Positions 35,228 through 35,243 of a DNA stretch of 64,000 nucleotides are shown in pieces. The first letter of the stretch is position 1. The number at the start of each line of letters is the position of its first letter. Under the pieces are notes generated by a model. It had not been told where the DNA came from, searched no databases, and worked only from the letters and a program-made list of their open reading frames with translations. The DNA is taken from assembly GCA_025558095.1 (NCBI GenBank), contig JAIVFI010000010.1:124001-188000 (forward strand). Direction: 5' to 3'. The position numbers and the translations under genes were made by a program. This DNA comes from Hyaloraphidium curvatum SAG 235-1 (Eukaryota > Fungi > Monoblepharomycota).

Positions 35228-35243
35228 GGCGTATCTAAACGCC
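35228..35243 (+). promoter_or_regulatory. Histone 3'-UTR stem-loop-like hairpin (H4 copy 1)
   Basis: GGCGTATCTAAACGCC followed by ACCAC, 43 nt after the stop. Confidence 0.7.

Follow-up and report, generated by a model that had tools for sequence, protein, structure and literature searches.

The 16 nt that follow a histone H4 stop codon in the fungus Hyaloraphidium curvatum (positions 35228–35243, + strand) resemble the 3' stem-loop of animal histone mRNAs, and the gene that carries them is spliced. [quoted passage not shown] The metazoan histone stem-loop system comprises SLBP, the U7 snRNP, Lsm10/11, and FLASH, and in animals splicing is thought to interfere with the hairpin pathway. Fungi were for decades described in textbooks as being without a histone stem-loop system. 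This view was overturned at the survey level by a preprint of 16 October 2026, in which Zhao, Bond and Ni Leathlobhair reported that Cryptomycota, Blastocladiomycota, and Chytridiomycota have both SLBP orthologs and stem-loops (bioRxiv 10.64898/2026.10.14.759114). The same preprint described sparse U7 factors, hairpins that coexist with poly(A) tails (the "SLBP-SL-PAS" state), and a heterogeneous picture in Chytridiomycota, with partial retention and a variable hairpin position; its main text does not touch on introns, and neither Hyaloraphidium nor any monoblepharid is named there. The DNA analyzed here, termed the window, is a stretch of 64,000 nt corresponding to positions 124001–188000 of contig 10 in a 31.9-Mb assembly of 55 contigs. 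Coordinates given without a contig are those of the window. For a dipeptidase encoded in the window, the closest Atlas clusters are fungal, which is weakly consistent with a fungal host.

A conserved 16-mer follows the H3 and H4 genes of the window

The window contains two divergently arranged H3/H4 gene pairs. The first H4 gene (34554–35184, + strand) has exons at 34554–34593, 34857–35109, and 35166–35184, as read from the sequence, and its H3 partner (33750–34369, − strand) has several introns. The second copies of H4 (57953–58583, − strand) and H3 (58767–59386, + strand) were mapped through an inverted repeat. This inverted duplication extends over roughly 31.0–40.6 kb versus 52.8–63.4 kb; its histone core (about 32.7–37.0 versus 56.2–60.4 kb) is 98–99% identical between the arms, and the outer genes are 72–77% identical, a pattern that looks like ongoing gene conversion limited to the histone region. 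Short CCTAA runs (TTAGG on the other strand) are found at 35320–35360, between the converging H4 and PNPOx-like genes.

The sequence GGCGT(A/C)TCTAAACGCC was matched exactly six times in the window, compared to 0.07 matches expected from dinucleotide shuffles. The pattern GGCGTMTCTAAACGCC placed one copy behind the first H4 gene (GGCGTATCTAAACGCC; 35228–35243, + strand), 43 nt past the stop codon; another behind the first H3 gene (GGCGTCTCTAAACGCC; 33698–33713, − strand), 36 nt past the stop; and a third at an orphan H3 end (32734–32749, − strand), 44 nt past a relic stop. The remaining three copies lie in the other arm of the inverted duplication, behind the second H4 gene (57894–57909, − strand) and, as assigned by the pattern match together with the duplication, behind the second H3 gene (59423–59438, + strand) and the second orphan end (60387–60402, + strand). 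All six copies are directly followed by AC on the 3' side. A preliminary description of this DNA had counted six copies with a 3' AC at 36–44 nt past the stops, which the pattern search and the measured distances bear out; it had also seen the motif nowhere else in the window, and indeed no further match to GGCGTMTCTAAACGCC appeared there when up to two mismatches were allowed. Because the inverted duplication doubles the nearly identical histone core, the six copies count as only three contexts (H3, H4, and the orphan H3 end) in two arms. Independence comes from the comparison of these three contexts among themselves and from further loci, found on three other contigs, of H2A, H2B, H3, and H4.

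The predicted RNA fold of the element consists of a 5-bp stem and a 6-nt loop, with energies of −7.6 to −7.9 kcal/mol. The 16-nt length and the register of the RF00032-type hairpin are retained, but the sixth "pair" is A·A or C·A in all 14 copies of the genome (see below), such that the 6-bp stem and 4-nt loop of that type are not formed. Across nine independent contexts, the GG..CC base, the G2–C15 pair, and loop positions U1 and U3 are invariant and match the Rfam register, whereas stem position 4 is a purine (G) with a compensating C at position 13. The preliminary description had drawn attention to the same retained features (length, GG/CC base, loop U1/U3, and 3' AC) and to the same departures (the purine in the 5' stem and the mismatched top pair), and both sets hold beyond the window. 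The Rfam Histone3 model aligned in register with the hairpin at 15.7 bits (the first H4 copy) and 13.9 bits, compared to a threshold of 34; at the gathering threshold, Rfam had no match in the window and RF00032 none genome-wide. The invariant block, present in all nine contexts, comprises CC, the 16-mer, and A, and the next base is C in eight of them. The 3' flank often reads ACCACC and the 5' flank is C-rich rather than A-rich, whereas the canonical flanks are CCAAA on the 5' side and ACCCA on the 3' side. Outside this block the 3' UTRs of the H2A, H2B, H3, and H4 classes are unalignable, which extends to all four classes what had been noted for the H3 and H4 UTRs.

The hairpin marks canonical core-histone genes throughout the genome

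Applied to the 32-Mb genome, a covariance model built on the nine independent contexts recovered exactly 14 sites, with scores of 44.7–50.9 bits; the next match scored 22 bits. These sites correspond to three H2A, three H2B, three H3, and three H4 genes plus the two orphans, distributed over contigs 7, 10, 11, and 24. All 14 are located on the sense strand, 36–61 nt past the stop, and every one of the 12 canonical core-histone genes carries the hairpin with an almost invariant 16-mer. The presence of the element in the 3' UTRs of H2A and H2B thus adds two classes to the H3 and H4 genes of the preliminary description. Contig 24 carries two H2A/H2B pairs, whose flanks are identical to each other. 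When the pattern was allowed up to one mismatch, 15 occurrences were found in the genome. A one-mismatch copy at contig 2:691337 was attributed to chance, as it has no histone gene upstream and was missed in the covariance-model search at E ≤ 10. A metagenome scan with the 18-mer gave 20 matches, none of them near a histone-like reading frame, and these also were considered chance matches.

No hairpin was found at two H3-variant loci (contig 11:629.6 kb and a divergent H3 on contig 3), two CenH3-like loci (contigs 2 and 25), an H2A variant (contig 16), or H1 (contig 9), where the best model score was 10.8 bits. The element is restricted to canonical histone genes and is absent from the variants and H1. 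The core sequence encoded by the H3 gene at contig 11:629.6 kb is that of a canonical H3, yet this gene lacks the hairpin. This gene, examined over contig 11:628800–631200, has an intron and no hairpin within 2.4 kb. It might supply the same protein as a replacement-type copy; by analogy, the pair of H3 genes with and without a hairpin is similar to the division in animals between genes of the replication-coupled and replacement types. The H1 gene (contig 9:520173–520465, − strand) contains introns and is free of the hairpin, unlike the animal replication-type H1. The canonical H2A (contig 7:186170–186385, − strand, and contig 24) ends in ..KKGASQEV, an H2A.X-type SQ(E/D)-hydrophobic tail, and the main H2A may double as H2A.X, as in yeasts. 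An H2A.Z-like C-terminus was not present among the five H2A_C matches.

Two introns were counted in H4, several in H3, one in H2B, and at least two in H2A. All 12 hairpin-bearing genes are spliced, which means that the hairpin and splicing coexist in this organism. Introns are known in the histone genes of Dikarya (PMC3029354, PMC13525598), but those genes are polyadenylated and are without the hairpin. The last H4 intron in the window (35110–35165) starts with GC. In the H4 paralog on contig 11 the intron apparently starts with GC as well, two bases further on, and this shift between paralogs is a possible case of intron sliding.

An orphan H3 end retains its hairpin

Each H3 gene is followed, about 0.95 kb downstream, by a diverged last H3 exon with its UTR. 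The relic of the first copy (32794–32820, − strand) reads ..RSLRGERS before the stop, and its counterpart in the inverted duplication is located at 60316–60342 (+ strand). Neither upstream H3 exons nor an acceptor site in the right phase was found at the orphan. Of the 22 bases around the hairpin, 21 are kept, while the surrounding UTR has strongly diverged, and this difference suggests selection on the orphan hairpin itself. As a speculation, the orphan hairpin might provide a fail-safe end for read-through transcripts.

The genome encodes a putative SLBP

A search with PF15247 (SLBP_RNA_bind) identified a gene at contig 24:320213–320468, where two exons gave scores of 48 and 57.2 bits over model positions 3–70; an SLBP homolog, whose absence would have spoken against the preliminary description, is encoded in the genome. 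The gene model begins with ATG and has at least two introns, with the domain reading ..RRLEQRQKQIDYGKNTAGYERYTKMVPK / SKRKRGDPQTPDKYASYSKRAWDGLVRVWRRKLHAWDPP across the two exons. When these pieces were searched separately, the best matches among solved structures were the Drosophila (4TUX, 4TV0, 4TUW) and human (4L8R, 4QOZ) SLBPs, with E-values of 1e-12 and 3e-9. The retained SLBP motifs are TPDK (for the TPNK phosphorylation motif), YSKR (for YSRR), and HAWDPP, and in a comparison with fly SLBP the YSKR and YSRR motifs align. In human SLBP, Arg181 reads the stem G2 (4L8R/4QOZ structure), and the arginine in YSKR (versus YSRR) presumably is its counterpart. The RNA-binding domain is complete and intact over the two exons.

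Searches for U7 snRNP components

Rfam RF00066 yielded no U7 snRNA match in the genome, and no exact copy of the animal-type U7 Sm site (AATTTGTCTAG) was present. One-mismatch Sm sites numbered 40, compared to 97 in a reversed control. After these 40 sites were fetched and folded, none was found to have both a 3' hairpin and, on the 5' side, a complement to several histone flanks. One candidate, at contig 2:693054, forms a good 3' hairpin, but its 9-nt complement is to a single histone flank, and the site was ascribed to chance. A PF01423 search revealed 16 Sm-fold loci, which by eye and by comparison with human sequences we take to be SmB, D1, D2, D3, E, F, G, Lsm1–8, and one NAA38-like protein. 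With all 16 loci assigned to the standard set plus the NAA38-like protein, no candidate for Lsm10 or Lsm11 was left; searches of this type for U7, Lsm10, and Lsm11 can miss genes that are short, divergent, or split by introns. No purine-rich downstream element was present behind the histone hairpins. These results are in line with the survey of the preprint, which reported Lsm10 and Lsm11 together in no fungal species (bioRxiv 10.64898/2026.10.14.759114), and the U7 and Lsm10/Lsm11 components that the preliminary description had listed next to SLBP were not found in the genome.

TGTA follows the hairpin at a short distance

In seven of the nine independent contexts a TGTA was observed 9–23 nt past the stem (P of about 3e-9 relative to the TGTA frequency of the window). 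The TGTA behind the first H4 stem-loop lies 9 nt past the stem (35252–35255, + strand), and those of the other five copies in the window start at 33689 (−), 32716 (−), 57885 (−), 59447 (+), and 60419 (+). An AATAAA-like hexamer was not found behind the hairpins, except for one AATGAA. Clusters of four to five TGTA also occur directly past the stops of two non-histone genes (1647–1686, + strand; 10553–10601, − strand), and another cluster is located behind a CenH3-like gene. The genome contains a CFIm25/NUDT21-type gene (PF13869) with four exons at contig 2:769324–770003 (− strand). CFIm25 is the UGUA reader in animals; baker's yeast is not known to have it. Because the clusters follow non-histone genes and CFIm25 is present, TGTA may be read as a general cleavage signal, an assignment based on few non-histone examples. 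Cleavage is likely to be carried out by the general machinery without U7, as far as these sequences indicate. The tight spacing between TGTA and the hairpin could instead mean a histone-specific coupling.

Other words were seen in the same regions. The TGTA cluster at 10553–10601 (− strand) is followed by TCCCGTCCA and GATTGG, and CCCGTCC-like words appear 50–80 nt past most histone hairpins. Together with the TGTA clusters, these words are candidates for general 3'-end signals of the organism. A GAAT/GATT-rich stretch (GTTGRAWTGRAT-like), found 12–32 nt past the hairpin, was considered as a histone downstream element and rejected: it is not fixed in position, and hairpin-free genes are followed by similar stretches.

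Discussion

The 16-mer is, with good confidence, a genuine SLBP-type histone mRNA 3' stem-loop that is predicted to lie in the 3' UTRs of all canonical core-histone genes of this chytrid-grade fungus. Its conservation could be merely apparent if recent duplication or gene conversion had multiplied a decaying, functionless relic, and some copies clearly are not independent, given the near identity of the window arms and the identical H2A/H2B flanks on contig 24. Such a relic is very hard to reconcile, though, with the recurrence of the same 16-mer in nine unalignable contexts of four gene classes on four contigs, with the hairpin bases kept at the orphan despite its diverged UTR, and with the retention of an intact SLBP gene, and we regard this explanation as highly improbable. 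We give just as little credence to the idea that the element works as DNA (whether as a terminator, an origin element, or an inverted repeat that binds protein) instead of as an RNA hairpin. The inverted repeat does lie in intergenic DNA between converging or neighboring genes; however, the 14 copies all point the same way with respect to their histone gene, no copy shows the asymmetric loop TCTA in inverted form, and the position, size, G2–C15 pair, loop U1/U3, and 3' AC fit an RNA element recognized by SLBP, for which a gene is present.

The manner in which the 3' end is formed is a separate matter. SLBP, encoded on another contig, would bind the hairpin and thereby separate canonical from variant histone mRNAs for replication-coupled handling, and the 3' end would be generated without a U7 snRNP by the general cleavage machinery, guided by the TGTA (UGUA) signals 9–23 nt past the hairpin. 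If TGTA serves genes in general, the histone genes have ordinary 3' regions with a hairpin just upstream, i.e., the "SLBP-SL-PAS" layout. Our leading guess, which we favor slightly, is a mature mRNA in which the hairpin is retained, followed some tens of nucleotides later by a poly(A) tail. A fully animal-like pathway would have a U7-like snRNP, divergent beyond detection, that cuts a few nucleotides past the stem (after ACC/ACCA) to yield mRNAs that terminate with the hairpin and are without poly(A). The conserved 3' AC(C), similar to the ACCCA cleavage context of animals, the exclusive association of the hairpin with canonical histone genes, and the (A)TGTA(C) located roughly at the position of the animal histone downstream element are all consistent with that pathway, but we judge it unlikely: the genome gave neither an Rfam U7 match nor an exact U7 Sm site, the one-mismatch Sm sites are outnumbered by those of the reversed control and never pair an upstream complement to histone flanks with a 3' hairpin, all Sm-fold loci read as standard proteins, TGTA clusters stand behind non-histone genes too, and Lsm10 plus Lsm11 are reported from no fungal species in the preprint (bioRxiv 10.64898/2026.10.14.759114). 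More tentatively, SLBP and the hairpin might join UGUA/CFIm-guided cleavage without U7, such that intron-containing pre-mRNAs would be cut at a fixed short distance. This doubtful but specific proposal would amount to a third route to histone mRNA ends, neither the animal U7 pathway nor plain polyadenylation, in which the orphan would act as the read-through fail-safe.

Comparison with the metazoan RF00032 system reveals a 16-nt sense-strand element in both cases, positioned tens of nucleotides past the stops of H2A, H2B, H3, and H4 genes and not in variants, with the GG..CC base, G2–C15, loop U1/U3, and a 3' AC, and an SLBP with a conserved RNA-binding domain. The element of H. curvatum differs in having five pairs, G instead of a pyrimidine at position 4, a C-rich 5' flank, and a score of 15.7 bits against the threshold of 34. 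Furthermore, its genes contain introns, H1 is without the element, searches for U7, Lsm10, and Lsm11 were negative, and TGTA takes the place of the purine-rich downstream element. Caenorhabditis elegans possesses the hairpin and SLBP (CDL-1) but is not known to have a recognizable U7 snRNP; this nematode would be a precedent for U7-independent hairpin use, although it belongs to the animals, its histone genes are intronless, and its stem-loop has the canonical sequence. The H3 gene of Volvox has an intron together with a 3' palindrome. Green algae (Chlamydomonas, Volvox) have divergent histone gene pairs with mRNAs ending in stem-loops (PMC13525598), and thus offer a non-animal parallel to the divergently arranged pairs described here; in contrast, Lsm10/Lsm11 occur in green algae (bioRxiv 10.64898/2026.10.14.759114), which also retain purine-rich downstream elements, and neither was found in this fungus.

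The closest parallel is provided by the early-diverging fungi of the preprint, which share with H. curvatum an SLBP ortholog, core-histone stem-loops, sparse or absent U7 parts, and signs of cleavage/polyadenylation signals close behind the hairpin. They differ in that retention is patchy in chytrids, compared to a near-invariant 16-mer in all 12 genes here, and in that TGTA is the candidate signal here, with no AATAAA-like hexamer. A fungal SLBP and stem-loop system is already known from that work, which overtook the novelty claimed in the preliminary description, and this genome is a clean new example of it. The earlier proposal of a variant SLBP-type 3'-end system that coexists with splicing is strengthened in part, by the H2A/H2B hairpins, the SLBP gene, and the introns in all hairpin-bearing genes; the part concerning 3'-end processing fared less well, as no U7, Lsm10, or Lsm11 was found and generic-looking cleavage signals follow close behind the hairpin. 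New here are the complete, near-invariant retention of the element, the split between canonical and variant genes, the introns throughout, the use of TGTA rather than an AAUAAA-like signal, and the conserved orphan hairpin. With hairpins at all 12 canonical genes, a hairpin-free H3 of the same core sequence, an intact SLBP, no U7 parts found, and splicing in every hairpin-bearing gene, H. curvatum is a good organism in which to study what SLBP and the hairpin do without U7 and how the hairpin pathway and splicing coexist.
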